Origin: Macrostomum lignano
Taxonomy: Eukaryota
Direction of reading: 5' to 3'
DNA length: 48,295 nucleotides
NCBI GenBank assembly: GCA_002269645.1
Contig: NIVC01000262.1
Coordinates: 378,887 to 427,181 of the forward strand
Part shown: one piece after another, positions 17,553 through 44,124 of the stretch
How positions within the stretch are numbered: position 1 is the first letter of the stretch
How the letters are laid out: the number at the start of each line of letters is the position of its first letter
Translations under genes and position numbers: made by a program
Notes under the pieces: generated by a model
Seen by the model: the letters and a program-made list of their open reading frames with translations, nothing else
Databases searched by the model: none
Told to the model about the DNA's origin: nothing

Positions 17553-18851
17553 CATAAATAAGGGAAGGAATTAAAGATAGGACAATATAGTATATCTTAA
17601 CAAAAGACAATGAGGGTGCTTAAGTAATCATATTATAAGCTTAGATTGAGTACTAAGGATTTAGGATTCTTTAAGGCTTTAGAAGTAGAGCATTAAAAAT
17701 AAGTTTAAGAACATAGATATAGAGACACTAATTCTAATTCCTATAAACCAAGAAGGGTAAGATTGGCATTTGGTATTTTATACATTTTTAATAGAGATAA
17801 GCTTATTGGTAAACATACATATACAACCTTGGGAATCACTTGGCTGTTTCTATTGGCAACACATACATGTAAGTCGCTATTGGCTGAGAGCAGTCATGTG
17901 ACTACTATTCTATCCAATAGTGACTTACATGTGTGTGTCAGTGTGTGTTGCACATAGAAATGGCCGGGTGAATCCCTAGGTTGCACCCAAGCCTGTTGGT
18001 AAAGGGTTGCTAAAGGGAATAGGCTAGATATTAAATACCATATGTTTTAGCAACGAGTATAACTATATCTAATTGCTATGCATTAAGAATTTCATAGGCC
18101 CCTATAGGGCCTAAGTTTCTTCATTGCAAATCAGACACTCAAAACAAAGAGTACCAATTAGTTGCTCTTAATTGAATAGAACTTAGAAGCCCTAATAACT
18201 TCTAACATAGGCCCTAATTCAATTTGAATATTATATTTTTCTAAGTAGTATTAGAAAGATCTTGGTGATTTATTTTTATTATTTTCTATCATAGCATATT
18301 ACAACATTTTCATTTCAAACAAGTAGATAAATAAAGTAACAAAATTCTAAAAATGAAAAATTTTCAAATAAAAAACTAATTTAAAAAATAATTTCTAAGA
18401 GTGATAATAAGCTAGTTAGGTATATTTTATAGGCCTTAACTTCCCTAACAAAATTGTATATGCAGGCATTCTTGCTAGCTATTCATGCGGTGCACAATTA
18501 TATCGAGGCCACATGGCTATCTAATGTAGTCTAGAGTACTAACAACAGCTATTTGCATTCATGCAAGATGCAACATGACTAGATTAGCAACACTGCCAAA
18601 TCCTGGCACATGGAGTTAAGAAAATAGGAAAACAATATGTTAGCAATATCAATTCTTTTCCTATTGTTAAACATGCTAATAGCATAGACAACTCAACTGT
18701 TTGACTTGACGTAGTTGTGGCATATGGTACTGCATTTCTGCTAGTACAATGACACACTATCCTCAGTCAGCTAGTACGGGTGATGGTCATTTCGTCAACT
18801 GGCGTTTCGTCAACTCGGTTGACGAAGTGACCAAAGTGTTGGGGCGACTTT

Positions 18852-20220
18852 ACGTATGAAACATTCGCCGACACTTATTCAGACACTTCTACAGACACTT
18901 TATTTTCTGTCGTACGGTTAGGAACAAGCATTAAATTTGTCTAGGACACTTCCTAATTCATATTTAATGAAATAAAGCAGTCCATGCATAGTTTTAATTT
19001 TGCAATTTTGTTTTTGTGCACTCGTTCCAGACTTTCAAATTATGGCTTTTATCGCGTAGTGTGCGTGCATGCATCGTGTACAACGATTAGCTGCAGCGTG
19101 CTAAATAGTTCAATTAGGTATTAAAAGCGTACAAGGTATTTGTACAATAGTATTTGTACATTTTAGTTGAAGTTAAAAGTTCAAGCTTTTAGTGAATCAT
19201 TGGAAAATAAAACTATCCGTTTTAAATCGTGCAACATATTGTTTTGTCTCGGACATTTGTGACACTGTCACTTAGGGTTGCAAGGTTTTTTAAAAGAGAA
19301 ACTGTTGCTTTTCCAATGCTGAAGTATTTGTGTTGTATGGATCAGGGTTTTTCGTCAAAATTTGGATGCATGTATACATCTAAACATATAAAAATGATCA
19401 AGGTTGAAGATTACCCTATGGTATAACTGTTTTCTCCATTTTACTATTTCAAAGTGCCCACGTGAAGTTAGATTTAGCATGCCAGCCTTAAAAAATAAAA
19501 AAATCTACATAGTGTAGAATTGTATACTCTTTTATTTAAGACTATATTATATTCCCAATATATTTGCTTAGATAAATCGAAAAGTATTTACTTTACTTGA
19601 AAAAAATAATGTTCACTACAAATATTTCAATGTAGAAACCAGGAAACATAAACCTATCAAGTGTTATATAGAAATGAAGGATAAAGATATGGATAGAATA
19701 TAATAAAGCCATTGTGGGCATTAAATATAAAACAAAAGAATCACTTAAGGCAAAATTTGAAAAAAGTGAATTTTTGGCATGCTCCAAGAAAAGAGGCTTA
19801 TAATTTGAAATATTTTTGCTTTTGTTTGACAAAAAATATGTATAGATTTATACTTTTGGGCAAGGTTTATTTTCTCTTAAAATTCTAATTGTAAATTTGC
19901 CAGTAAGCTTAAAAATTGTTGTAAATTGAAGCTCAAATAAAATTAGTCTTAACTCCAATCTGACTTTCCAAAGTAAATCCCTAAATTATTTGTTACAATT
20001 GCTTTAAAAACTTGCCATTTCATTTATTCATTAATCAAAATTTTGTTCTAGAAACTGATACCTATAGAAGGTTTTTAGTTTTTAAGAAATCTAGTAACTA
20101 GTGTCAGAGAAATATGTTTATGTAGGTTTTATATATATATATCAACCTTATATATAAAAAAGGTTGCACACTGAGATTTAAATACAGCTTCTAACATGTG
20201 TGTCCAGAGGTGAGATTGTG
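18852..20220 (+). repeat. Left TIR, unique outer domain (inverse of 30683-32052)
   Basis: Near-perfect reverse complement; the ORF track mirrors it (e.g. MQHIVLSRT.. on opposite strands); only about 2 substitutions noticed. Confidence 0.97.
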
Positions 20221-23030
20221 GCCAACTGCACACCAATAGCATACCAACTCTATACCAAATCCATACTGACATGCCAACTGTATACCAACTGTATACAAAC
20301 ACCATATCAACTCCATACCAACTGCATACCAACCCCATACCAATATGCCAACTGCATACCAACTCCATACCAATATGCCAACTGCATACCAACTCCATAC
20401 CAACATGCCAACTGCATACCAACTACATACCAACATGCCAACTGCATACCAACACCATACCAACTCCATACCAACTGCATACCAACTGCATACCAACTCC
20501 ATACCAACTACATACCAACATGCCAACTGCATACCAACACCATACCAACTCCATACCAACTGCATACCAACTCCATACCAACTATACTCCAACATGCCAA
20601 CTGTATACCTACACCATACCAACTGTATGCCAACTGCATACCAACTCCATACCAACATGCCAACTGCATACCAACTCCATACCAACATGCCAACTGCATA
20701 CCAACTACATACCAACATGCCAACTGCATACCAACACCATACCAACTCCATACCAACTGCATACCAACTGCATACCAACTCCATACCAACTACATACCAA
20801 CATGCCAACTGCATACCAACACCATACCAACTCCATACCAACTGCATACCAACTCCATACCAACTATACTCCAACATGCCAACTGTATACCTACACCATA
20901 CCAACTGTATGCCAACTGCATACCAACTCCATACCAACATGCCAACTGCATACCAACTCCATACCAACTGCATACCAACTCCATACCAACATGCCAACTG
21001 CATACCAACTCCATACCAACTGCATACCAACTACATACCAACATGCCAACTGCATACCAACACCATACCAACTCCATACCAACTACATACCAACATGCCA
21101 ACTGCATACCAACACCATACCAACTGCATACCAACTCCATACCAACATGCCAACTGCATACCAACTACATACCAACATGCCAACTGCATACCAACACCAT
21201 ACCAACTCCATACCAACTGCATACCAACTGCATACCAACTCCATACCAACTACATACCAACATGCCAACTGCATACCAACACCATACCAACTCCATACCA
21301 ACTGCATACCAACTCCATACCAACTATACTCCAACATGCCAACTGTATACCTACACCATACCAACTGTATGCCAACTGCATACCAACTCCATACCAACAT
21401 GCCAACTGCATACCAACTCCATACCAACATGCCAACTGCATACCAACTCCATACCAACATGCCAACTGCATACCAACTACATACCAACTGCATACCAACT
21501 ACATACCAACATGCCAACTGCATACCAACACCATACCAACTCCATACCAACTACATACCAACATGCCAACTGCATACCAACACCATACCAACTGCATACC
21601 AACTCCATACCAACATGCCAACTGCATACCAACTACATACCAACATGCCAACTGCATACCAACACCATACCAACTCCATACCAACTGCATACCAACTCCA
21701 TACCAACTATACTCCAACATGCCAACTGTATACCTACACCATACCAACTGTATGCCAACTGCATACCAACTCCATACCAACATGCCAACTGCATACCAAC
21801 TCCATACCAACTGCATACCAACTCCATACCAACATGCCAACTGCATACCAACTCCATACCAACTGCATACCAACTACATACCAACATGCCAACTGCATAC
21901 CAACACCATACCAACTCCATACCAACTACATACCAACATGCCAACTGCATACCAACACCATACCAACTGCATACCAACTCCATACCAACATGCCAACTGC
22001 ATACCAACTACATACCAACATGCCAACTGCATACCAACACCATACCAACTGCATACCAACTCCATACCAACTACATACCAACATGCCAACTGCATACCAA
22101 CACCATACCAACTCCATACCAACTGCATACCAACTCCATACCAACTATACTCCAACATGCCAACTGTATACCTACACCATACCAACTGTATGCCAACTGC
22201 ATACCAACTCCATACCAACATGCCAACTGCATACCAACTCCATACCAACATGCCAACTGCATACCAACTCCATACCAACATGCCAACTGCATACCAACTA
22301 CATACCAACTGCATACCAACTACATACCAACATGCCAACTGCATACCAACACCATACCAACTCCATACCAACTACATACCAACATGCCAACTGCATACCA
22401 ACACCATACCAACTGCATACCAACTCCATACCAACATGCCAACTGCATACCAACTACATACCAACATGCCAACTGCATACCAACACCATACCAACTCCAT
22501 ACCAACTGCATACCAACTCCATACCAACTACATACCAACATGCCAACTGCATACCAACACCATACCAACTCCATACCAACTGCATACCAACTCCATACCA
22601 ACTATACTCCAACATGCCAACTGTATACCTACACCATACCAACTGTATGCCAACTGCATACCAACTCCATACCAACATGCCAACTGCATACCAACTACAT
22701 ACCAACATGCCAACTGCATACCAACACCATACCAACTCCATACCAACTGCATACCAACTGCATACCAACTCCATACCAACTACATACCAACATGCCAACT
22801 GCATACCAACACCATACCAACTCCATACCAACTGCATACCAACTGCATACCAACTCCATACCAACTATATTCCAACATGCCAACTGTATACCTACACCAT
22901 ACCAACTGTATGCCAACTGCATACCAACTCCATACCAACATGCCAACTGCATACCAACTCCATACCAACTCCATACCAACATGCCAACTGCATACCAACT
23001 CCATACCAACATACTAACTACATACCAACA
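20221..23030 (+). repeat. Left TIR inner minisatellite array of 11-bp (CCAACTGCATA/CCAACTCCATA) and 8-bp (CCAACATG) units
   Basis: Direct reading, about 2.8 kb. Confidence 0.97.
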
Positions 23031-23107
23031 TGACAACTTATATTATGCCACACTAAACGAAAACATGGCAAATTCATACCATTGTTTCATGTTTCAGGCT
23101 TCTTTGC

Positions 23108-25945
23108 ATGGCAGCGAAGAAAAGTGTGAACGACACTTCTGAAGCCATTAGCGGTGACCATTCAGGTGCTGCTGGTGCACAAGTTTTTTCTGCTGGAGGT
23201 TTTTTTGTGGAATCATGCATATCAACTAATCTCTTCGTGAATCACTTTGATACAAGAACTTGTAAACTTAAGCCTTCTTGGTTGGATCAAGTCATTTATC
23301 CACTGTTAAGACAGCATGGTGAGTATTGTCAGTTCTCAGTTAATAAGGTTAGACTGCGTGCATTTAAGCGCCATAGGAAGGACTGCAGTTTTCTTTGGAT
23401 GCGCCTAGTCTGTGCCGAAGGCTCTGGTTGCAGTATGGCATTCGTCGTCACCTTAAACAAGGCGCCGACTGATGGGCAGTCCTCTACACTGACGCTACGA
23501 AGAATCTCAGAGCACTCGGGGCATGATGTTCCATCAAGTTGTTCCTCTTATCGCTATCTGTGGCAACGAGGTTCACAAGAGTGCCGTAACTTTGTTTTAT
23601 CTCAGGCCACCAACCCTGCTGCCAAGCCAACGCAGATCTATGTGAAAGCAATCGAGCTGTTTGGTAGCGAAGAATGCTCTCTATCTGCTGTCCGTACAAC
23701 TGTTAGTCGGACAAAAGCTGCCGACGACAAGTCTCCAGACGACATAAGAGATTTAAGACTCCAAATGAAAGACTGGAAGTTGACTATAAACGAGGATGGA
23801 GTCATTAGCGGCTATATCCAAAAGATTGACGTTGCACCAGTTAGTGTGATTCTCCATACCTCCATGCAGTTGGATTTGCTTCGCGACGTGCTGAAAGGCA
23901 ATCAGCTTGCTCCTCTCCACTTAGACGCCACCGGCGGAATTGTGCGACAGACCCAGAACGTGCCGAGCACTGTACTTCTGTGCAGTGCTGTTGTTGCAAC
24001 CCCGGATATAAAGAGAACAGCTGTATCAGAAAGCATCATGGAGGTCACGCGCTCGGAAAATGTGTCCAGTTGGCTAATGCATTTTTTAGCAGATTTCGCT
24101 CGTCACTGCAACATAGGACTGTGGGAACTACCCAAGAAAGGTCCGCAAATCTACGTGTCTGACTTTAGCTGGGTTTTCATTCATGGTATTCTCCGAGCCG
24201 CATGCACGACCTGTGTTACAGACTACCTGCGTGTACAGTACAATCGACTTCGGAGTGCTGATCTGAAGCCACCTGAATCTCCTGTTGTGTTTATCTGTAG
24301 CTCGCATTTGCTGCGCGCTGTTGCCAGGACTTTGAAGTCACCAGATAAAATCGATAAGGTTACTTATCGCGAGTTCATGCTCTCTTTTGCACTATTAGTG
24401 ACGTCGAAAACTTTGCGTTGCGCCCAAGCTGTTTGGAAGGCAATGGTCGAGGTGTTTACCTCCAGGCGGGTAAATCCTGCCACTTTGAAGGCTTTACAAA
24501 TTCTACATGGTAGGTTCGACTTCAGTTCGTTGGAGATTCCTGATGAAAACCAAGTGGCTGAAGATTCTGCTAATGTCTCAAATGCAGTGCAAGAAGACGT
24601 CGCATTGGCTGAATTGGAGACTGGACTACGAGCCTCATCACCTTTTGCGAAGTACTTCAACGATTTGACAAGCGAAGTGACAGCAAGCGATGGCAATGGC
24701 GTGCTGAACAATCTTTTCTACCCTCAGGCTGTTCAGGTTGTATTGCGAAAGTGGATGCCACTGTTTCCTCTTTGGAGTGTGGCAGTGTTTGGAGGAAATC
24801 GTAGCGCACACGTGACCAACGCCGCTGTTGAATCATGGTTCAGCTGGTGCAAAAGCGAAGCACTGCCTTCTCCAAGTTCTCGGCTCAGGTTACCAAGATT
24901 TGTCCGTGCGCAACTAACAACCGTAAAACTGCAACTGAAGCGGTTGCAGCACGAGCAACATCCAATTCGCCCCCCAAAGCGTGCTAGAGGACGCAAATGT
25001 GGCTTTGATGCTCCGTTAAACCCACCTGGAGATCCCTGGAAAAGGTCAGGAGCCTCAAAAAGACGAAGAACCAGCTTCATTCAATCGGCATTATCAATTC
25101 CGCCAGCCGTTGCACCCACGACCTGTACTCTAGCTGCGCCTGCTGCAAGTGGGTCTCGCTTGGGCAGCCAGCCCGTCATTGTCCAGGTTCGGCCTGCTAT
25201 TGCACCCACGACCTGTACTCTAGCTGCGCCTGCTGCAAGTGGGTCTCGCTCGGGCAGCCAGCCCGTCATTGTCCAGGTTCGGCCTGCTATTGCACCCACG
25301 ACCTGTACTCTAGCTGCGCCTGCTGCAAGTGGGTCTCGCTGGGGCAGCCAGCCCGTCATTGTCCAGGTTCGGCCTGCTATTGCACCCACGACCTGTACTC
25401 TAGCTGCGCCTGCTGCAAGTGGGTCTCGCTTGGGCAGCCAGCCCGTCATTGTCCAGGTTCGGCCTGCTATTGCACCCACGACCTGTACTCTAGCTGCGCC
25501 TGCTGCAAGTGGGTCTCGCTCGGGCAGCCAGCCCGTCATTGTCCAGGTTCGGCCTGCTATTGCACCCACGACCTGTACTCTAGCTGCGCCTGCTGCAAGT
25601 GGGTCTCGCTGGGGCAGCCAGCCCGTCATTGTCCAGGTTCGGCCTGCTATTGCACCCACGACCTGTACTCTAGCTGCGCCTGCTGCAAGTGGGTCTCGCT
25701 GGGGCAGCCAGCCCGTCATTGTCCAGGTTCGGCCTGCTATTGCACCCACGACCTGTACACTAGCTGCGCCTGCTGCAAGTGGGTCTCGCTGGGGCAGCCA
25801 GCCCGTCATTGTCCAGGTTCGGCCTGCTATTGCACCCACGACCTGTACACTAGCTGCGCCTGCTGCAAGTGGGTCTCGCTCGGGCATTTCACCTGCACCA
25901 ACAGCACAGAATACCACCTGTCACAGCCTACCAGATGAGCAAATT
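23108..25945 (+). CDS. MULE/Mutator DDE transposase, exon 1 of a predicted transposase-USP fusion
   Basis: N-terminal C..C..H.H WRKY/GCM-like region; LHLDATG (D1), VSDFSW (D2), CSSH (CxxH), TNAAVESWF (E); GTGAGT donor at 25946; the ORF itself reads on to 26074. Confidence 0.88.
25102..25880 (+). repeat. Coding 90-bp tandem repeat (30 aa, PAIAPTTCTLAAPAASGSRWGSQPVIVQVR) x ~8.6
   Basis: TGCACCCACG recurs every 90 nt from 25111 to 25831. Confidence 0.97.
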
Positions 25946-26142
25946 GTGAGTGATGAAATTGCATTTTTTCAGTTTAGAAATACCTTCAGTCAACCCTTGT
26001 ATTGGTTTACGTATTGTGTATGCGCCGTACACTCACTCCGCCACAATTTGCGTCTCCCACTAGATCTGTCGTAGTAATGTATGTGCCATGTCTCAGCAAC
26101 TTGTGGGTAAGGTGCAACCTTATCAATCAACTCTCTTTGTAG

Positions 26143-26167
26143 GCCTCCTCCGTCTCGACTGGCACAG
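26143..26167 (+). CDS. 25-nt micro-exon linking transposase to USP domain
   Basis: CTCTCTTTGTAG acceptor and CAG|GTATTT donor; converts phase 0 to the phase 1 needed by the next exon. Confidence 0.55.
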
Positions 26168-26481
26168 GTATTTATATTGCACAATCCAACATGTTCCGTA
26201 TGATGCACGTCTCTGTTACGTGATTGTTCTCTGATTAGAGATCTAAAGTTTATGATTCTATCATTTTTTTGCTTTTCGTGTCACCGATTATGCCCTTTTA
26301 AGTTTTACTAATTTCCATGAATTAGCATTCAACATGTTGCTTTCCATAAGTATTTGTACTTTTAAGTTTCGTTTCTTTTGCTTACGTCGAGGCGCCATTT
26401 TTTGTTGTTAAATGGATGTGACTGGGCTGTTCACTGGGACATTTTGATGGTAAATTCGTTCCTAACCGCCAATTTTATTAG

Positions 26482-26813
26482 GACGCGCCGACACTGCAGT
26501 GTCATTTCCTGCACTATCGCCACGGTCGCCAGAGGGGCTACCGAATCCGACGGGCACGTATTGTGCTTTCAATGCCGCCAGTCAATGCTTGGTTGCAACA
26601 TTAACGAGCGCACTATCGTGTGATGCAGATTCACCACTTGCATTGTTCCTTAACTGCCTAATGACAGGCAAAGACGTTCTGTTGCTGCATTCAGCCGCGT
26701 TTCAGTGGTGCAGTAAAGCATTTCATATGGATCCTATGGCACAAAACTGTGCCTTAGAGTTTCTGACCGGAATGCTGTTTCTTTCTGAGCTCAAACTGCG
26801 ATTCAGCTGCGAG
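26482..26813 (+). CDS. USP (peptidase C19) N-terminal exon with Cys box
   Basis: GLPNPTGTYCAFNAASQCL (Cys box) and AQNCALEFL (QQDAxEFL-like); GAG|GTAAGG donor. Confidence 0.8.
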
Positions 26814-27034
26814 GTAAGGGTGAACGGTTTATTAAGTTTATGACTATTTAAATGCGTTTTAGTAAAGTGATTTAAGCCTGCATCCTGAATCTAAATTTAT
26901 TTGTAAGTTACCTTCGAAGACAGTATATACTTTGCTGGAAGGCAAAGAATACCTTTCAATCGCGCTTCCACTGTGTGTTGGTCTTCACAGTTGCACCATG
27001 AGTACTGTTCCTATCCATCTTTTTTATTTCGTAG

Positions 27035-27562
27035 ATTTCTACAACTTTGAGTTGTTCCGCCTGTTTCAAAGTGACACGACTGCTACCTAGAGACACGGCA
27101 ACTATTCTACGTTTATCAATTCCTGATCACGACGACTCGCTTGATTTCCCGGCACTCATTAGACAGTCACTGTTTTCTACTCAAGACCACACCGACATCC
27201 GTTGTCCGACTTGCGACGTCGGGGGGTGCAGCTATGCACAAACACTTGCAACAACGTCGGAGCACATATGCATGGGAATTAGCCGAGTCTCTGTCAAGCG
27301 CAGAAAGGGACAAACTGTACTATTCGAGAAGAACACTAAAGTTGTACCCATCGAGATGAAGCTTACTTTGAGTGGCAGAAGCTACAAGCTTCGTGCAGCC
27401 ATCGTTCACATTGGTAGTCGCGTGAATAGTGGTCACTATATTGCATACGTATTCTGTGGCCGCACTAGCTACTGTGTCAGTGATTTGACTGTACGAAAAG
27501 TATCTTTGTCAGCGGCATTCAATGACGTGAAGCGAAACTGCTGCGCTCTTTTTTACGGCTAA
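27035..27562 (+). CDS. USP (peptidase C19) C-terminal exon with zinc-finger cysteines and His box
   Basis: ISTTLSCSAC..CPTC..YKLRAAIVHIGSRVNSGHYIAYV..VSDLTV..ALFYG*; TTTCGTAG acceptor, phase 0. Confidence 0.88.
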   Translation: MSTTLSCSACFKVTRLLPRDTATILRLSIPDHDDSLDFPALIRQSLFSTQDHTDIRCPTCDVGGCSYAQTLATTSEHICMGISRVSVKRRKGQTVLFEKNTKVVPIEMKLTLSGRSYKLRAAIVHIGSRVNSGHYIAYVFCGRTSYCVSDLTVRKVSLSAAFNDVKRNCCALFYG

Positions 27563-28404
27563 CGTGCTGGTGATCTCCGTGTTATTAACATAATGTGGAC
27601 GGTTTACTTATTTTCTTGAGTTTATTCGTGTTTGTAATGGTCTCATGCCGTTGAAAGTATAAATTCATAACTGATGATCGTGCTGTGTAATGTATTTATA
27701 ACAAAAACTTTTAACTGTGTTGAAAAGGTCTACATATATACATGTACGGATTTGCATTTTATAGTTTACCGCCATTTTAATTCTCTATTTTTCTGTATGC
27801 GCTAAAAGCTGGGACTAAACGCCGTTAGTAAACCGTTTAGACAACGTGAGTTCTAAAACTTATAGTGTCAACTATATACTCTTTTCTTGCAGCTAAATAC
27901 TCTCCATTTGAGTATAATCGTAATTGTTTTTGGCCTGTGAAACCTGTACACCTGTCACTTATCACTTAGGCCAATAAATGTCACAAAAGAAAAAATTGTT
28001 CAACGAAATACGTGCCATGAAACATTCCTTTGCTTTATTTATCCGAAAGAATTTATTTCAACACAAGGACTGACAACTAATACGGGTAAAGGAAATGAAA
28101 CTGTTCAAATATAAGTATAAACTACAATTAATCGTTCAAGGAAGTATAGATTAAAAACCACATAAGATACTTGTCTCATAGTTACTACTACGCTGAAGTC
28201 ATTCAACTACATACTTTGTTGCAATGAAAATTGTTGCATGGTACAATAGATAAGCCAATAAGCTATACGAACGGTATGACTTTGTTTAATGCTCGAATAC
28301 CAGCGTTCTTATTTTCGTGCAAAAGAAGCTGGCAAACTCGCATAACGAACTCGCAAACTGAACAGACACGCATCCGATATTCCGTCACGCATCATCCTAG
28401 TCTG

Positions 28405-29544
28405 TTACTCATGCCTCGTTCGCGAGCGCAATGACATCGCTGGTTGGACCGACCTTAAAGATCTCTGGGGCCTCTGCGATCTCCGACGCATTGGTTTTAG
28501 TGGTCCAAGAGCGGGACACTCGTACTGTTGGGACTGCCGCTGTTCATCCAGCTCGAGCTGCCGCGGCTCCTCCTGCAATGCGAGTTGCCGTTGGCCGTCC
28601 TGTATCTGCGGATGCCGCTGTTCATCCAGCTCGAGCTGCCGCGGCTCCTCCTGCAGTGCGAGTTGCCGTTGGCCGTCCTGTATCTGCGGATGCCGCTGTT
28701 CATCCAGCTCGAGCTGCCGCGGCTCCTCCTGCAGTGCGAGTTGCCGTTGGCCGTCCTGTATCTGCGGATGCCGCTGTTCATCCAGCTCGAGCTGCCGCGG
28801 CTCCTCCTGCAGTGCGAGTTGCCGTTGGCCGTCCTGTATCTGCGGATGCCGCTGTTCATCCAGCTCGAGCTGCCGCGGCTCCTGCAGTGCGAGTTGCCGT
28901 TGGCCGTCCTGTATCTGCGGATGCCGCTGTTCATCCAGCTCGAGATGCCGCTGCTCGTCTTGCAGCGCGTGCTGCCGCTGCTCCTCATCAGTTGGGCGTG
29001 ATCGCCGCTGCATGAAACGCCGACGGTGCACAGTCGATTGTAGCTGACTGAAGCCGCGCGAGACAACGAGCAGAGAACGAAGAACAGACACATCACATGA
29101 AGAAATAAGGAGCCGAAAGCTCTGCAAAACTTGCTTCCGCAGTCGCTTTGAACTTTGAAAATGGTGACCCGGAACCTCTCGACGTAGGACAACTGACTGC
29201 GTCAGATGTGGCTTAGTTACACGCTGCAGCCAAGCAATGCCATTACCACGGTGGTCTTTGTTTCCACAACCATATACACCGTGCAAAAATGCAACCTTGC
29301 TAGGATCGGTTATTAATTGGACAACAGACACTCGATCACGTCCGCACCTACGAAATCCGTCTCGCACACGGATATTAGAATGATTAAATGAACGTGTGCA
29401 AACGCAAAGCCTCTGGCAAACCGACTGAATCGATAGTTCATCGCTGTTGTTGAACGTCACAATGACAGGAAGAGAAGGGCATGGTAGGACCGCACCTACA
29501 CAAGGCAGAACAGCATCCGGTGGGCCTTGTAATAACTGGTCCAT
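28405..29544 (-). CDS. Second, convergent transposon ORF (379 aa, unknown function) with Gln/Glu/Arg-rich 26-aa repeats
   Basis: Long ORF extending about 550 nt beyond the repeat; converges on the transposase gene; true start and splicing not established. Confidence 0.55.
   Translation of the reverse strand: MDQLLQGPPDAVLPCVGAVLPCPSLPVIVTFNNSDELSIQSVCQRLCVCTRSFNHSNIRVRDGFRRCGRDRVSVVQLITDPSKVAFLHGVYGCGNKDHRGNGIAWLQRVTKPHLTQSVVLRREVPGHHFQSSKRLRKQVLQSFRLLISSCDVSVLRSLLVVSRGFSQLQSTVHRRRFMQRRSRPTDEEQRQHALQDEQRHLELDEQRHPQIQDGQRQLALQEPRQLELDEQRHPQIQDGQRQLALQEEPRQLELDEQRHPQIQDGQRQLALQEEPRQLELDEQRHPQIQDGQRQLALQEEPRQLELDEQRHPQIQDGQRQLALQEEPRQLELDEQRQSQQYECPALGPLKPMRRRSQRPQRSLRSVQPAMSLRSRTRHE
28537..28990 (-). 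repeat. 78-bp tandem repeat (26 aa, EEPRQLELDEQRHPQIQDGQRQLALQ) x ~6
   Basis: Direct reading; one unit is 75 bp, so frame is preserved. Confidence 0.96.
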
Positions 29545-29670
29545 GAATATGGAAGAGTGCGATTTTAGTCATCAAAAGAGTCAGGAAAGATGGCAACATG
29601 GCAGAAGTATCCCAAGAGTTGTACAAAAAGAGAACCTAAAAGTTCCTACGAGTCTCGCAATTTAACATTC

Positions 29671-30682
29671 TTGGTATGGAGTTGGCATGCAGTTGGCATG
29701 TTGGTATGGAGTTGGTATGCAGTTGGTATGCAGTTGGTATGCAGTTGGCATACAGTTGGTATGGAGTTGGTATGCAGTTGGTATGCAGTTGGTATGCAGT
29801 TGGTATGCAGTTGGCATACAGTTGGTATGGTGTTGGTATACAGTTGGCATGTTGGAATATAGTTGGTATGGAGTTGGTATGCAGTTGGTATGCAGTTGGT
29901 ATGCAGTTGGTATGGAGTTGGTATGCAGTTGGCATGTTGGTATGGAGTTGGTATGCAGTTGGTATGCAGTTGGTATGGTGTTGGTATGCAGTTGGCATGT
30001 TGGTATGGAGTTGGTATGGAGTTGGTATGCAGTTGGTATGGAGTTGGTATGCAGTTGGCATGTTGGTATGGAGTTGGTATGCAGTTGGCATGCAGTTGGT
30101 ATGGTGTTGGTATGCAGTTGGCATGTTGGTATGTAGTTGGTATGCAGTTGGTATGGAGTTGGTATGGTGTTGGTATGCAGTTGGCATGTTGGTATGTAGT
30201 TGGTATGCAGTTGGCATGTTGGTATGGAGTTGGTATGCAGTTGGCATGTTGGTATGGAGTTGGTATGCAGTTGGCATACAGTTGGTATGGTGTAGGTATA
30301 CAGTTGGCATGTTGGAGTATAGTTGGTATGGAGTTGGTATGCAGTTGGTATGGAGTTGGTATGGTGTTGGTATGCAGTTGGCATGTTGGTATGTAGTTGG
30401 TATGGAGTTGGTATGCAGTTGGTATGCAGTTGGTATGGAGTTGGTATGGTGTTGGTATGCAGTTGGCATGTTGGTATGTAGTTGGTATGCAGTTGGCATG
30501 TTGGTATGGAGTTGGTATGCAGTTGGCATATTGGTATGGAGTTGGTATGCAGTTGGCATATTGGTATGGGGTTGGTATGCAGTTGGTATGGAGTTGATAT
30601 GGTGTTTGTATACAGTTGGTATACAGTTGGCATGTCAGTATGGATTTGGTATAGAGTTGGTATGCTATTGGTGTGCAGTTGG
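29671..30682 (-). repeat. Right TIR inner minisatellite array (about 1 kb)
   Basis: Reverse complement of the 20221-23030 units. Confidence 0.97.
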
Positions 30683-32052
30683 CCACAATCTCACCTCTGG
30701 ACACACATGTTAGAAGCTGTATTTAAATCTCAGTGTGCAACCTTTTTTATATATAAGGTTGATATATATATATAAAACCTACATAAACATATTTCTCTGA
30801 CACTAGTTACTAGATTTCTTAAAAACTAAAAACCTTCTATAGGTATCAGTTTCTAGAACAAAATTTTGATTAATGAATAAATGAAATGGCAAGTTTTTAA
30901 AGCAATTGTAACAAATAATTTAGGGATTTACTTTGGAAAGTCAGATTGGAGTTAAGACTAATTTTATTTGAGCTTCAACTTACAACAATTTTTAAGCTTA
31001 CTGGCAAATTTACAATTAGAATTTTAAGAGAAAATAAACCTTGCCCAAAAGTATAAATCTATACATATTTTTTGTCAAACAAAAGCAAAAATATTTCAAA
31101 TTATAAGCCTCTTTTCTTGGAGCATGCCAAAAGTTCACTTTTTTCAAATTTTGCCTTAAGTGATTCTTTTGTTTTATATTTAATGCCCACAATGGCTTTA
31201 TTATATTCTATCCATATCTTTATCCTTCATTTCTATATAACACTTGATAGGTTTATGTTTCCTGGTTTCTACATTGAAATATTTGTAGTGAACATTATTT
31301 TTTTCAAGTAAAGTAAATACTTTTCGATTTATCTAAGCAAATATATTGGGAATATAATATAGTCTTAAATAAAAGAGTATACAATTCTACACTATGTAGA
31401 TTTTTTTATTTTTTAAGGCTGGCATGCTAAATCTAACTTCACGTGGGCACTTTGAAATAGTAAAATGGAGAAAACAGTTATACCATAGGGTAATCTTCAA
31501 CCTTGATCATTTTTATATGTTTAGATGTATACATGCATCCAAATTTTGACGAAAAACCCTGATCCATACAACACAAATACTTCAGCATTGGAAAAGCAAC
31601 AGTTTCTCTTTTAAAAAACCTTGCAACCCTAAGTGACAGTGTCACAAATGTCCGAGACAAAACAATATGTTGCACGATTTAAAACGGATAGTTTTATTTT
31701 CCAATGATTCACTAAAAGCTTGAACTTTTAACTTCAACTAAAATGTACAAATACTATTGTACAAATACCTTGTACGCTTTTAATACCTAATTGAACTATT
31801 TAGCACGCTGCAGCTAATCGTTGTACACGATGCATGCACGCACACTACGCGATAAAAGCCATAATTTGAAAGTCTGGAACGAGTGCACAAAAACAAAATT
31901 GCAAAATTAAAACTATGCATGGACTGCTTTATTTCATTAAATATGAATTAGGAAGTGTCCTAGACAAATTTAATGCTTGTTCCTAACCGTACGACAGAAA
32001 ATAAAGTGTCTGTAGAAGTGTCTGAATAAGTGTCGGCGAATGTTTCATACGT
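30683..32052 (-). repeat. Right TIR, unique outer domain
   Basis: Reverse complement of 18852-20220. Confidence 0.97.
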
Positions 32053-32499
32053 GCGACTTTTGTGGCAGTGGGGTTGTGTGGTAGGGCGAGCTACCACTCC
32101 GAGCAAGAACGTTTCGTGAGACGGCGACGGGTGACATCACCGCTATGACTCGTTGTATTTTGTCACCCGGTGCGCCGTCCCATGCCCCATCCTTTGCCGA
32201 TGCTCTAAGTTTTGTTTTTTCTCCGTTCCCGGCTTTGTTGTCGTCCGTTGCCCCATCTTTTGCCCCATTCTCTGCCCCATCCCTTGCCTTGTTGCCCCAT
32301 CCCTGTCCGGGCGACACTTCCTCTATTTATATGGCCAATTCGGGCCGCCTGTTTTTATGTTTTTTTTGTTTTTCCTTCCTCCCTTCCTCCTCCCCCTTCC
32401 CCTTCTCCTTCCTGCTGTTAACTTCTTACGTTTTCTGGTTTTGTTCTTAGTTTCTTTTGTTGGTTTAACGTAGCATAACTTAGTTTGGTGTTTTAAGTT

Positions 32500-41201: not shown

Positions 41202-43325
41202 TTACCACGAGGCCTGGTACCTTTGCGGCTGATGGACAAGCCGACCTCGCTTGGTCCGGAACCCAGAGTCGTCCGAGCTTGAGCACGGTTGCACAGATGC
41301 CGGCTGCTCAGCTGGCTGCACTGGCTCTGCAGGCTGCTCTGTCGTGGGTTGCACGGCCGGTTGCACGGGTGCCTGCTGGTCGTCCGCCTCCGACAGATTG
41401 ACATCCTCATCAGCCACTGCCACTGGGTAGCTTTCATGGAATGGCACGCCGATCTCACGTGGCATGATGAACCGCCGGTTGCGCCTGAGCAGCTGGCCCG
41501 ACTCCGTGCGAAGCCAGTACGACCGCGGGCTGCCGTCCACCTCGCTGTCGACCTCGGCAGCCACCCAGTTCCGACGATCGCACTGAAGCCAGACCGGCTC
41601 GCCGACCTCCAAGCGTCGAAGTGCGTGCGCACCGCGGTTGTAGAGCTGAGCTGCCCGGGTCCGCTCCTTCTGGAATGCTTCGATGCTGGCATGCACGTAG
41701 GTCTCCCGAGGCCGCAGATCTTGCACCGTTGTCGGCAGGTCGCACCGCAGTTTCCGGCCAAACGCCATTTCCGCCGGGCTGGGGAAGCCGCTGCCGACCG
41801 GCGTGTTGCGATAGTGCAAAAGGGCCAGTGCCAGGCTCTATCCAGTCCCCTGGCACTTCTTCATCATATTCTTGGCAGTCTGCACATATCTCCTTTGACT
41901 GGGCCTTCATGTTACGCTGGCAGGCCTCGCACTGGCTGACAGTTCGCTCGATGCAGGTGCGCATTCCTGGCCAGTAAAAATAATCTTTGGCTTTCAGGTC
42001 CATCTTGACGATTCCAGGGTGTCCAGCGTGCAAAATTCTTAGGATCGAGCTTCTGGCGCTGCCGGCTGGCACGTAGATGCGGTCCTTCAGGCACAGGAGT
42101 CCTGAGACGAAAGTCAGATCATAGCGAAGATCCCAAAATACTTTCAAATCGTCAGGTAGTCGGTTTCGATGCTCGGGCCATCCGGCTTGAATGACCTCCT
42201 GCAGACGCTGGCTCGTCTGGTCTGCAGCCGTGGCCTTATTGATCATTGTCAGAATCTCGCGGTCTCCACTGAAGCACCGCTCCACAGCTAGCACTTGTCC
42301 GTCCAAAGCTTTCTCCAGCAGAAGCGTCAGGCTGTCCGTCTTTCCGTGAGCTCGGCTTAGCGTGTCTGCGACGTACAGCTCCTTTCCTGGTGTGTACTTC
42401 ACACGAATGTCGTAGGGCTGCAGCTGCAGCAGCAAGCGCTGGATGCGCGGCGTGGTGTCACAGAGCTGCTTCTTTAAGATGGACTCCAGTTGCTTTTGGT
42501 CACTCTGGACATTAACAGTGCGGCCCCAGAGGTAGCGGTGAAATTTCTTGCAGCCGTACACAATAGCCAGGAGCTCCTTCTCAATCTGCGCGTATGCCTG
42601 CTGAGCTTTAGTCATGGCTGATGAAGCGAACTCAACCGGACGGTCCTCTTGGAGTAGCACAGCACCGATGCCGCTCTTGCTGGCATCCACAGACACGGTG
42701 ACTGGCTTGCTGACGTCAAATGTGGCCAAAACCCTGTTAGAACACAGCTCCGTGATGATCGAGTCGTACGCCTCGTCGTGCTGATGCGTCCAGCTCGAAA
42801 TGACGTCTTTCTTGAGCAGGTGTCTAAGCGGCTCTGCAGTAGCGGAAAGATGAGGACAAACTTGGCCAGGTACGTCACACAGCCGAGAAATCGCCTTAGC
42901 TGCTCCTTCTTCGAAGTGAGAGCTTCAACATCATTCGGCCGGATCATTTCTTTGATGGCTTTGACCTTCATTGGATCTGCTCGCAACCCTTCCGAGCTGA
43001 GCACATCGCCTAGGTAGTTGAGCTCTTGGACACCGACTCGCATCTTCTGTGGGTTCAGTGTCACCTTGGCACGCTTGCACTGCTCCAGGAGCTCTCGCAC
43101 AGCTTGGTCGTGCTCCTCGACTGTTCTTCCCCACACGATGATGTCGTCAAAGAAGTTCTTAGAGTTTCTCACGTTGTTTGTGACGTTTTCTTCCATTCTC
43201 TTCTGGAAGACCTAGGGAATGGATGAGAGACCGTATGGAACTCGTTTCCAGCGATATCGGCCGAACGGGGTGTGGAACGTGGTCAGGAAGAAGTTTTCAT
43301 CATCGAGTTTTAGTTTTAGTTTTAT
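41202..43325 (-). mobile_element. Defective Ty3/Gypsy pol (RT-RNase H-partial integrase) with frameshifts and deletions
   Basis: TTFHTPFGRYRWKRVPYGL, FFDDIIVWG, DASKSGIGAVLLQ, YAQIEKELLAIVYGC, VADTLSRA, H..H..CEAC, HYRNTP..SPAEMAFGRKLR; gag, protease and 5' LTR are absent. Confidence 0.95.
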
Positions 43326-43344
43326 TCCAGCCGACAAGCCACGT

Positions 43345-44124
43345 TTAATGGATATGTTTTTATGTCTGCATTTGATTTCTGTATTGCTCAACACAAATAT
43401 TTTTTTTGGAAATCAAGATCTTATCTTAGACCAGGTTCTACACGATTTTTACTCTTGTGTCAATGATCTCTTTGGGATAAGCTTTTATAGTCCAGTTGTT
43501 CATGGCTTACAGCACCTAATAGAGGACTATAAACTCCATGGAACTGTTGAAAAATTCTCATCATTTATGTTTGAAAATTTTAACCGATACATTAAAAAAG
43601 CTGTGAGATCGCCACATCTGCCTTTAGAGCAACTTGCAAATAGGCTATCAGAAACAGATCCATGTCTTGGCAGGCTAATTATTGAGACTCCAGTTTTTCC
43701 TATTGTGTCAAGTCAACATTATTATCGATCCAATGATTTGCCTGAATTCTGCAGGGATTATTCCATGTTTAGACAAGTCAGACTTACAATCAATATAAAT
43801 TTATTGCTCAGGCAATGCGATTCATTTTTTGTTATCAATAATAAAGCTGGCAAGCCTAAAGCATGTAAGCTAGTAAACATTCTTCATAATTCAGCACGCT
43901 GTGAAACCCTGCTTGTCTATCGCCAATTCTCAGTTTGTGAAAGTTTTTACCATCTGCCTTTTGAATCATCAAAAGTAGGCATTTATCGGCTGTCTAGTTT
44001 GCAAAGAGGTATTAAAATTTCTGACTTTAGCCGTGTGAAGTCCAAGCTGTTCGTTGTACCAAGGAAAACCTCTGATTACTATCCATGTACTTTGCTGCAT
44101 ACTTTATGGAAAACCATTTTTTAA
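43345..44124 (+). mobile_element. C-terminal part of an EnSpm/CACTA (CMC)-type transposase, 5'-truncated
   Basis: FLCLHLI..VHGLQHL..HGTVEKFSSFMFENFNRYIKKAVRSPHLPLEQLANRLSE motif of animal EnSpm-like transposases. Confidence 0.8.

Follow-up and report, generated by a model that had tools for sequence, protein, structure and literature searches.

Does the transposase of a mobile element in the flatworm Macrostomum lignano bring its own deubiquitinase with it, and are the two made as one protein? The question is raised by a stretch of 48,295 nucleotides of contig NIVC01000262.1 (positions 378,887 to 427,181, forward strand), called the window below. An initial annotation of this DNA had joined a Mutator transposase in frame to an intact ubiquitin-specific protease (USP) through exons at 23108-25945, 26143-26167, 26482-26813 and 27035-27562, giving a single protein of ~1240 residues. 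We found that positions 18852-32052 of the window are a young class II cut-and-paste transposon of M. lignano that is probably still active. On the same strand as its transposase, this one mobile element encodes a complete and apparently intact peptidase C19/USP domain, which its sequence motifs mark as a putative isopeptidase. On balance we lean towards a recently active, autonomous Mutator-like element with Rehavkus-type anatomy, in which the USP would be translated as a C-terminal extension of the transposase by way of an in-frame splice isoform.

The ends of the element could be placed to the nucleotide. An 8-bp target-site duplication, GCGACTTT, lies at 18844-18851 on the left and the same octamer recurs at 32053-32060, beyond the right end (neither copy has a strand). 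Between them are terminal inverted repeats 2.4 kb long. The left repeat (18852-21290, plus strand) is ~96% identical to the reverse complement of the right repeat (29671-32052, minus strand); the element begins ACGTATGAAACATTCGCCG at one tip and carries the reverse complement at the other, ...CGGCGAATGTTTCATACGT. The left repeat is unique as far as ~20221 and then passes into a subterminal minisatellite with an 11-bp unit, CCAACTCCATA (20222-23038, plus strand, detected with Tandem Repeats Finder, TRF), and the same minisatellite lies inverted inside the right repeat at 29671-30682. The arrays in the two arms are unequal, with ~270 units (~2.8 kb) on the left and ~96 units (~1.0 kb) on the right, and their length varies among copies of the element. 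They are also the cause of long spurious open reading frames (ORFs) on both strands.

We compared the window copy (locus L008 on NIVC01000262.1 of assembly Mlig_3_7; window coordinate = L008 coordinate + 13113) with the other annotated copies. Window and contig agree without a difference throughout the element and for 3 kb on either side of it. Homology between copies began exactly at 18852 and ended exactly at 32052. Five out of five insertions with unrelated flanks (the window copy, L001, L002, L007 and L009) had perfect 8-bp duplications, the octamers being GCGACTTT, TACACTGT, TTATTAAT, CTTCAGAA and TTATTTTC. The copies were 12.3-13.5 kb long and ~99% or more identical across most of the element (95.6-99.7% per aligned block). 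The USP region had only 5 variable alignment columns in 1.8 kb among five copies; selection tests between copies were dropped for this reason, mutations that follow insertion being neutral in any case. Inverted repeats, duplications, five loci with different flanks and an intact transposase ORF together mark the element as an autonomous cut-and-paste transposon. The transposase ORF was intact in four of the five copies. In the copy at L009 (NIVC01002605.1) a 1-nucleotide frameshift in the transposase leaves an ORF of 636 residues (protein P0004, ending ...IRPQSVLEDANVALMLR), so not all copies are autonomous.

The transposase exon (23108-25945, plus strand) was a 100% match to proteins P0001 and P0006. 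Left unspliced, its frame stays open to 26074, and this 988-codon ORF (23108-26074) was 100% identical to the GenBank proteins BOX15_Mlig004567g1-g4 and Mlig024943g1. The GenBank coding sequence of BOX15_Mlig004567g3, which corresponds to 23114-26604 of the window, is labelled '5-prime partial' and starts 6 nucleotides past the ATG. The start codon itself lies within TTGCATG (23104-23110), identical to the last 7 nucleotides of the M. lignano spliced leader; this match could be a coincidence, or a source of confused mapping of spliced-leader reads. An exhaustive phmmer search returned 641 relatives of the transposase at E<=1e-3. Pfam gave no match in residues 1-666 at E<=1, and nothing relevant was matched when a profile of the transposase family was run against PDB sequences. 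The catalytic core of DDE type with a CxxH motif, as read in the initial annotation, was borne out by alignment: D273 (DATGG), D352 (SDFSW), C397-x-x-H400 and E575 (VESWF), encoded at 23924-24832 on the plus strand, fall in columns that are invariant or nearly so in alignments A1 and A2. The motifs DATG, DFSW, CxxH and VE(N/S)WF are conserved across the family.

An AlphaFold model of the transposase from 39 sequences reached a predicted local distance difference test score (pLDDT) of 81. Its best fold matches in the PDB were three entries of ISCth4, a member of the IS256 family (E 1.4e-4, probability 1.00), and the next-ranked match was Hermes (hAT) at E 0.029. Mutator transposases have their accepted relative among prokaryotes in IS256. 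The model has beta-strands at residues 76-134, and here Foldseek matched the DNA-binding domain of AtWRKY18 (7z0u_A) with probability 1.00 and a TM-score (template modelling score) of 0.64 on the target. A WRKY-type zinc-finger DNA-binding domain is predicted from this fold at about residues 76-140 (approximately 23333-23527, plus strand), in agreement with the DNA-binding region named in the initial annotation. WRKY and GCM1 fingers are the usual DNA-binding domains of Mutator transposases. By its modelled fold, and not by any profile, the transposase appears to be Mutator-like.

The USP is encoded downstream on two plus-strand exons. The first (26482-26813, a 99% match to P0003) contains the Cys box (GLPNPTGTYCAFNAASQCL; Cys codon 26562-64) and a QNCALEFL box, which corresponds to the QQDAxEFL box of canonical USPs. 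The second (27035-27562) contains two CxxC pairs (CSAC and CPTC), a GHY His box, the Asp and an ...ALFYG end, with the stop codon at 27560-62. The catalytic residues stand in canonical order, the Cys being followed by the His (SGHYIAY) at 27434-36 and the Asp (CVSD) at 27482-84. We found that the C-terminal 304 residues matched the Pfam UCH family (PF00443) at 37.9 bits (cut-off 23.9; E 1.9e-9), residues 92-303 being aligned to profile positions 72-254. Because this match crosses the junction between exons 3 and 4 (residue 129/130), the splice 26813|27035 proposed in the initial annotation is supported. The sole sequence matches in the PDB were USP30, USP12, USP46 and USP25, which were weak and aligned to the His box. 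The USP frame is open from 26482 to the stop at 27560, ~285 codons once the 26813|27035 splice is made. Ahead of the Cys box this frame lacks an ATG, and the USP therefore depends on coding sequence further upstream.

That upstream sequence could be supplied by the transposase. Towards its 3' end the transposase exon contains an in-frame linker of 90-bp (30-residue) repeats, 8.6 units long (25110-25886, plus strand; TRF, 98% matches), which had been noted from the start; the five copies have 9, 5, 5, 6 and 5 units. The linker is followed by the intron of the annotated transcripts (25946-26481, plus strand, 536 nucleotides, GTGAGT...TTATTAG). All eight splice boundaries of the proposed four-exon path are canonical GT/AG, and the joined exons make a 1240-codon ORF without a stop. 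The donor at 25945 and the acceptor at 26482 are both genuine in the sense that P0001, P0005 and P0006, which derive from RNA sequencing (RNA-seq), use them, joined to each other. Other in-frame routes are available. Every 90-bp unit contains a phase-1 donor-like site, CAA|GTGGGT, and nine such repeat-internal donors can be joined in frame to 26482; UniProt A0A1I8HZW9 (= P0003), a partial gene model of the locus, uses a repeat-internal donor and reads ...AAPAA|RRADTAV. A further in-frame route is a tandem donor at 25949, four bases past 25945.

The main gene runs from a WRKY zinc finger and DDE transposase through the variable 30-residue repeat linker and an intron to the two USP exons. In the reading that we favour, in-frame splicing would add the USP to the C terminus of the transposase in one isoform, reached through a small exon, the tandem donor at 25949 or a donor inside the repeats, and this fusion isoform would exist alongside the annotated frame-shifted isoform, which would yield transposase only. 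The DNA-binding domain of the transposase could then bring the USP to the element ends. There the transposase complex, or chromatin close by, may be freed by the USP of ubiquitin or a ubiquitin-like modifier, and such removal might protect the complex or counter host silencing. Candidate targets put forward in the initial annotation are the transposase itself, H2A and repair factors.

Relatives of the transposase show that such an arrangement occurs elsewhere. We ran Pfam on 45 long relatives and found PHD fingers in 13-18 of them, Ulp1/Peptidase_C48 in 9, YqaJ in 4, OTU in 1-2 and UCH in 1-3; MULE was matched weakly by 2 of the 45 (best E 0.0015). Among ~155 relatives, at least 10 predicted proteins combined the transposase core with a USP Cys box downstream of it. 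Nine of these (P0019, P0026, P0040, P0044, P0054, P0069, P0083, P0104 and P0147) fit the pattern G[ILM]xNxxxxCW[LI][NI]SxLQ. In a protein of the clam Mercenaria mercenaria (XP_053374366.1), the transposase core occupies residues 74-496 and UCH residues 645-842, and one continuous exon (L004 14978-16033) encodes the C-terminal half of the transposase, the linker and the Cys box GNTCW. Two loci checked at the DNA level, L005 and L006, gave uninterrupted translation across transposase and Cys box, with the remaining USP exons downstream in L006. From the clam gene, the nine Cys-box relatives and the uninterrupted L005 and L006 we conclude that transposase-USP fusion is recurrent in the family; since these relatives encode both in one protein, the idea of a fusion in M. 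lignano is biologically sound. Judged by these predicted proteins, the family transposase is normally accompanied by a C-terminal cysteine isopeptidase, mostly Ulp1/C48 and, in some lineages, USP or OTU.

Two further observations were made in these relatives. In the distant relatives P0074, P0128 and P0041, the DDE core is followed by a PHD finger, a YqaJ-type exonuclease, Ulp1/C48 and a further PHD finger, an accessory-domain set that is unusually rich for a cut-and-paste transposase. In the clam, a gene model with a Peptidase_C48 match lies directly downstream of the transposase-USP gene (L004, CM038769.1, 44050-54008), and the region may hold several related elements.

Several observations weigh against the reading of a Mutator-like element that makes a transposase-USP fusion, and they touch each of its parts. 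At the level of classification, the transposase was not matched by the MULE profile PF10551 at E<=1, so that the Mutator label first given to it holds for the fold (ISCth4/IS256, WRKY) but not for the Pfam check. The 8-bp duplication, present in five of five insertions, compares with 9 bp listed for Rehavkus, and lies at the low edge for the Mutator superfamily (~9 bp, range 8-11). At the level of the domain, the Cys box is off consensus, with the Asn 6 residues before the Cys and not 5; it also falls outside the Pfam alignment, in which the first 71 profile positions are unaligned. A single-sequence AlphaFold model of the USP was unusable (pLDDT 34). Two of the five copies, L002 and L007, have a 1-nucleotide deletion in a G6 run of exon 4 (27221) that frameshifts the USP, which may be an assembly error because it lies in a homopolymer and the assembly is PacBio-based. 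The description of the USP as intact is upheld by the UCH score, the Cys, His and Asp and the CxxC pairs, but not by the extra residue in the Cys box.

At the level of the splice path, the 25-nucleotide micro-exon (26143-26167, plus strand) is unsupported. It is omitted by the annotated transcripts, and we found 16 stop-free, frame-restoring AG..GT segments in the 536-nucleotide intron, compared with a mean of 13.9 in shuffled introns, every one of which holds at least one. The micro-exon is at chance level and should not count as evidence. The GenBank models P0001 (on two contigs), P0005 and P0006 instead join 25945|26482 and read ...DEQI|DAPTLQCHF...; the frame shifts after ...DEQI, the annotated protein ends at 26604 and the USP is left out of frame, as holds for the five annotated copies that reach this junction. 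RNA-seq underlies the M. lignano annotation, which drew on StringTie/TACO, TransDecoder and a mapped de novo transcriptome (PMC5730564). None of the element copies has an annotated USP protein, and the protein collection searched held no transcript-derived protein covering USP exon 4. Among the other in-frame routes, the tandem donor at 25949 looks weak when set, roughly, against the donor consensus in general. With the micro-exon at chance level and the only transcript models putting the USP out of frame, the single ~1240-residue protein, for which the stop-free path and the fused relatives speak, is a reasonable hypothesis that the available transcript models contradict.

The same evidence would suit USP exons that are an untranslated relic of a former fusion, with the main splice of today's master copy (25945|26482) out of frame, the transposase now ending in a 40-residue junk tail and an undecayed USP lying in the 3' untranslated region. 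The frame-shifted models, the chance-level micro-exon and the exon 4 deletion all fit a relic. USP protein, annotated or transcript-derived, is limited to one partial UniProt gene model, and the copies are too young for decay to show. We nevertheless think this explanation rather unlikely. A two-exon frame of ~285 codons with canonical sites, a significant Pfam match and the full complement of catalytic and zinc residues speaks for selection up to the very recent past. The locus offers several routes in frame, and among relatives fusion is the rule. Short-read pipelines can overlook minor isoforms and exons of small size, and the annotated models artificially collapse the 90-bp repeats, showing 2 units compared with 9 in the genome (5-6 in other copies). 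Because no single intron can produce a 2-unit array, the GenBank models are not fully reliable, and the locus has an annotation problem of its own, a frame-shifted model with collapsed repeats.

The closest relative of the window transposase belongs to a second M. lignano family (P0008, ~40% identity), the inverted-repeat tips of which, ACGTGTATAACATTTACCGAC, are similar to those of the window element. This sister family (L003 3453-21902, and L011) is older and has 67-bp inverted repeats. In two copies, an exon several kb downstream is homologous to the Ulp1 catalytic region of fused proteins, among them P0077, P0016 and P0074, and in P0074 Pfam matched C48 over the region homologous to this exon. 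Fragments of mariner-like and reverse-transcriptase type are nested in L003, where a clean target-site duplication was not seen. Interrupted by repeats or a nested retroelement, L003 and L011 are uninformative on conservation of the intron or micro-exon, and the contig of P0009 (L010) ends too soon to show what follows the transposase.

We used neighbour-joining with capped distances and 200 bootstrap replicates to place the window sequence among these relatives. In 185 of the 200, the window and its nearest Ulp1-bearing relatives excluded the other USP-bearing members, and the smallest clade uniting the window with another USP-bearing member always included Ulp1-bearing members. Used as a phmmer query, the window USP had no match among 155 family members, and in BLASTP it showed no significant similarity to the clam USP (23% identity, E 2.1). 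Taken together, the grouping and the comparison with the clam USP point to a separate acquisition or a module swap for the window USP, as far as a distance tree of divergent sequences, itself weak, can indicate.

This grouping with Ulp1-bearing relatives and away from the USP-bearing clade would also be compatible with a USP that is a passenger, that is, a host-gene fragment captured in Pack-MULE style and of no use to the element, and gene capture is known in Mutator-like elements (PMC6446971). We regard this as improbable. Apart from P0003, no protein similar to the window USP was found among 5.8 billion in a word-indexed search, a type of search that yielded little here (the transposase family profile A1 matched 4 proteins). 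With no close host USP paralogue in M. lignano or elsewhere in that collection, a recent capture of a host USP is unlikely. The USP is moreover a whole catalytic domain as opposed to a fragment, its orientation and position are those usual for the isopeptidase module of the family, and USP modules are recurrent in the family.

More improbable still is a separate USP of ~296 residues, produced by operon-like processing with the spliced leader trans-spliced at 26142/26143 (M-ASSVSTGTG-RADTAV...). In its favour, the M. lignano leader ends ...TTGCATG (PMC8629364), ~30% of the genes are trans-spliced and many are in operons (PMC8629364; PMC5730564), the acceptor at 26142/26143 has a good polypyrimidine tract, and, as 26143-26167 begins in phase 0, an ATG supplied by the leader would be read in frame. 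Against it, such agreement of frame is expected a priori in one case out of three, none of the copies has a trans-splice site or a gene annotated at that point, no AATAAA occurs from 26074 to 26142, and the relatives have true fusions. A leader ATG joined at the acceptor 26482 was rejected, as it leads into the wrong frame of the annotated model.

Beyond the preferred reading of an in-frame transposase-USP fusion, the family suggests a broader scheme, which we put forward tentatively and consider possible though doubtful. In a widespread animal Mutator-like family, the C-terminal protease might be an exchangeable cassette; USP would have been gained at least twice independently, once in a clade of molluscs and environmental eukaryote contigs and once in Macrostomum within the Ulp1 clade, and in the flatworm either transposase only or transposase-USP would be made, according to which 5' splice site is chosen. 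If this were true, transposition, or escape from silencing, would include deconjugation at the transposition complex as a regulated and selectable component. The presence of Ulp1, OTU or USP at the same position after the same transposase suggests a general need for ubiquitin-like deconjugation and not for one particular enzyme. Since the element was apparently active very recently, and its host is transformable, with RNA interference and good transcriptomes, it offers a practical system for finding the protease substrate (silencing factors, chromatin marks or the transposase itself) and for asking if transposition falls once the protease is lost.

The element has a second ORF of 379 residues (28405-29544, minus strand), annotated as a gene of 299-377 residues in the copies L007, L008 and L009. 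The C-terminal half of this ORF is composed of 78-bp repeats, and it had no Pfam match. Outside the element, a plus-strand ORF in a GC-rich stretch at 3494-4858 matches the BRCA2 OB1 domain strongly (E 3e-20) and the Tower domain weakly, and probably represents an exon of the BRCA2 gene of the host. On the other side, a minus-strand fragment of the pol gene of a long terminal repeat (LTR) retrotransposon, with reverse-transcriptase RNase H and an integrase zinc finger (41455-42729), adjoins a plus-strand ORF with a weak DUF4218 match (43219-44124); both are further mobile elements.

Compared by published description, the window element is Mutator-like with Rehavkus-type anatomy. Reports of Rehavkus, a group of the Mutator (MULE) superfamily, come from arthropods and annelids (Dupeyron et al. 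2019, PMC6446971; bioRxiv 10.1101/2024.12.02.626372), and it is described as having long inverted termini and variable subterminal tandem repeats (bioRxiv 10.1101/2024.12.02.626372, a Tribolium satellite study; PMC6446971). The window element shares with it a DDE transposase with CxxH and a minisatellite beside the inverted repeats, and the PHD fingers in relatives of its transposase are a further likeness. It differs in its inverted repeats, 2.4 kb in contrast to the 26-400 bp listed for Rehavkus, and in its protein, which has no PHD match in Pfam and carries a USP instead. ISCth4 (PDB 6xgx, 6xg8, 6xgw) is the best match to the modelled catalytic region, but sequence identity is ~10% and global TM-scores are 0.19-0.30; the insertion between the second D and the E is ~110 residues larger in the eukaryotic protein, which also adds the WRKY finger, the linker and the USP.

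Zisupton is another group associated with zinc fingers and an Ulp1 protease. The window element resembles Zisupton/KDZ elements in its 8-bp duplications (PMC12730594) and in having a large multi-exon transposase gene (PMC9297572), but its transposase fold matches the IS256/Mutator type. Animal Zisupton transposases are recognised by Pfam PF18758 (PMC9297572), which matched neither the window protein (E<=1) nor the 45 relatives (E<=0.001). The hAT, P-element and Zisupton groups, all suggested by the 8-bp duplication, were ruled out by the fold ranking and the absence of PF18758.

Proteases of the SUMO and ubiquitin systems are found in several transposon superfamilies. In Mutator elements, Ulp1/C48 is known from KI-MULEs, VANDAL elements and the MuDR elements of hydra and lancelet (Bao et al. 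2010, PMC2836005). What the window element shares with these is a cysteine isopeptidase of the ubiquitin/SUMO system encoded by a transposon of Mutator type, and C48 occurs in its own relatives, including the sister family. The window element differs in that its C19 USP belongs to another papain-like family, for which the expected substrate is ubiquitin and not SUMO. OTU and VTD deubiquitinases occur in Helitrons and Helentrons (PMC9741609), and OTU or Ulp1 in Ginger1 (PMC2836005). Trichomonas vaginalis XP_001314237.1, in which Peptidase C19 is joined to an IS5-like transposase (cited in PMC2836005), shares with the window element a C19 domain fused, or here putatively fused, to a DDE transposase. 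The Helitron, Ginger1 and Trichomonas cases involve other transposase superfamilies and another element anatomy than that of the window element. We found no published Mutator- or Rehavkus-type element with a USP in the searchable literature, which does not cover Repbase. In this respect the USP in this position appears to be new, as the initial annotation had suspected, but its counterparts in at least 10 of the ~155 relatives and the Trichomonas precedent narrow that novelty. The element is a further variant of a known theme, that of ubiquitin and SUMO proteases borne by transposons.

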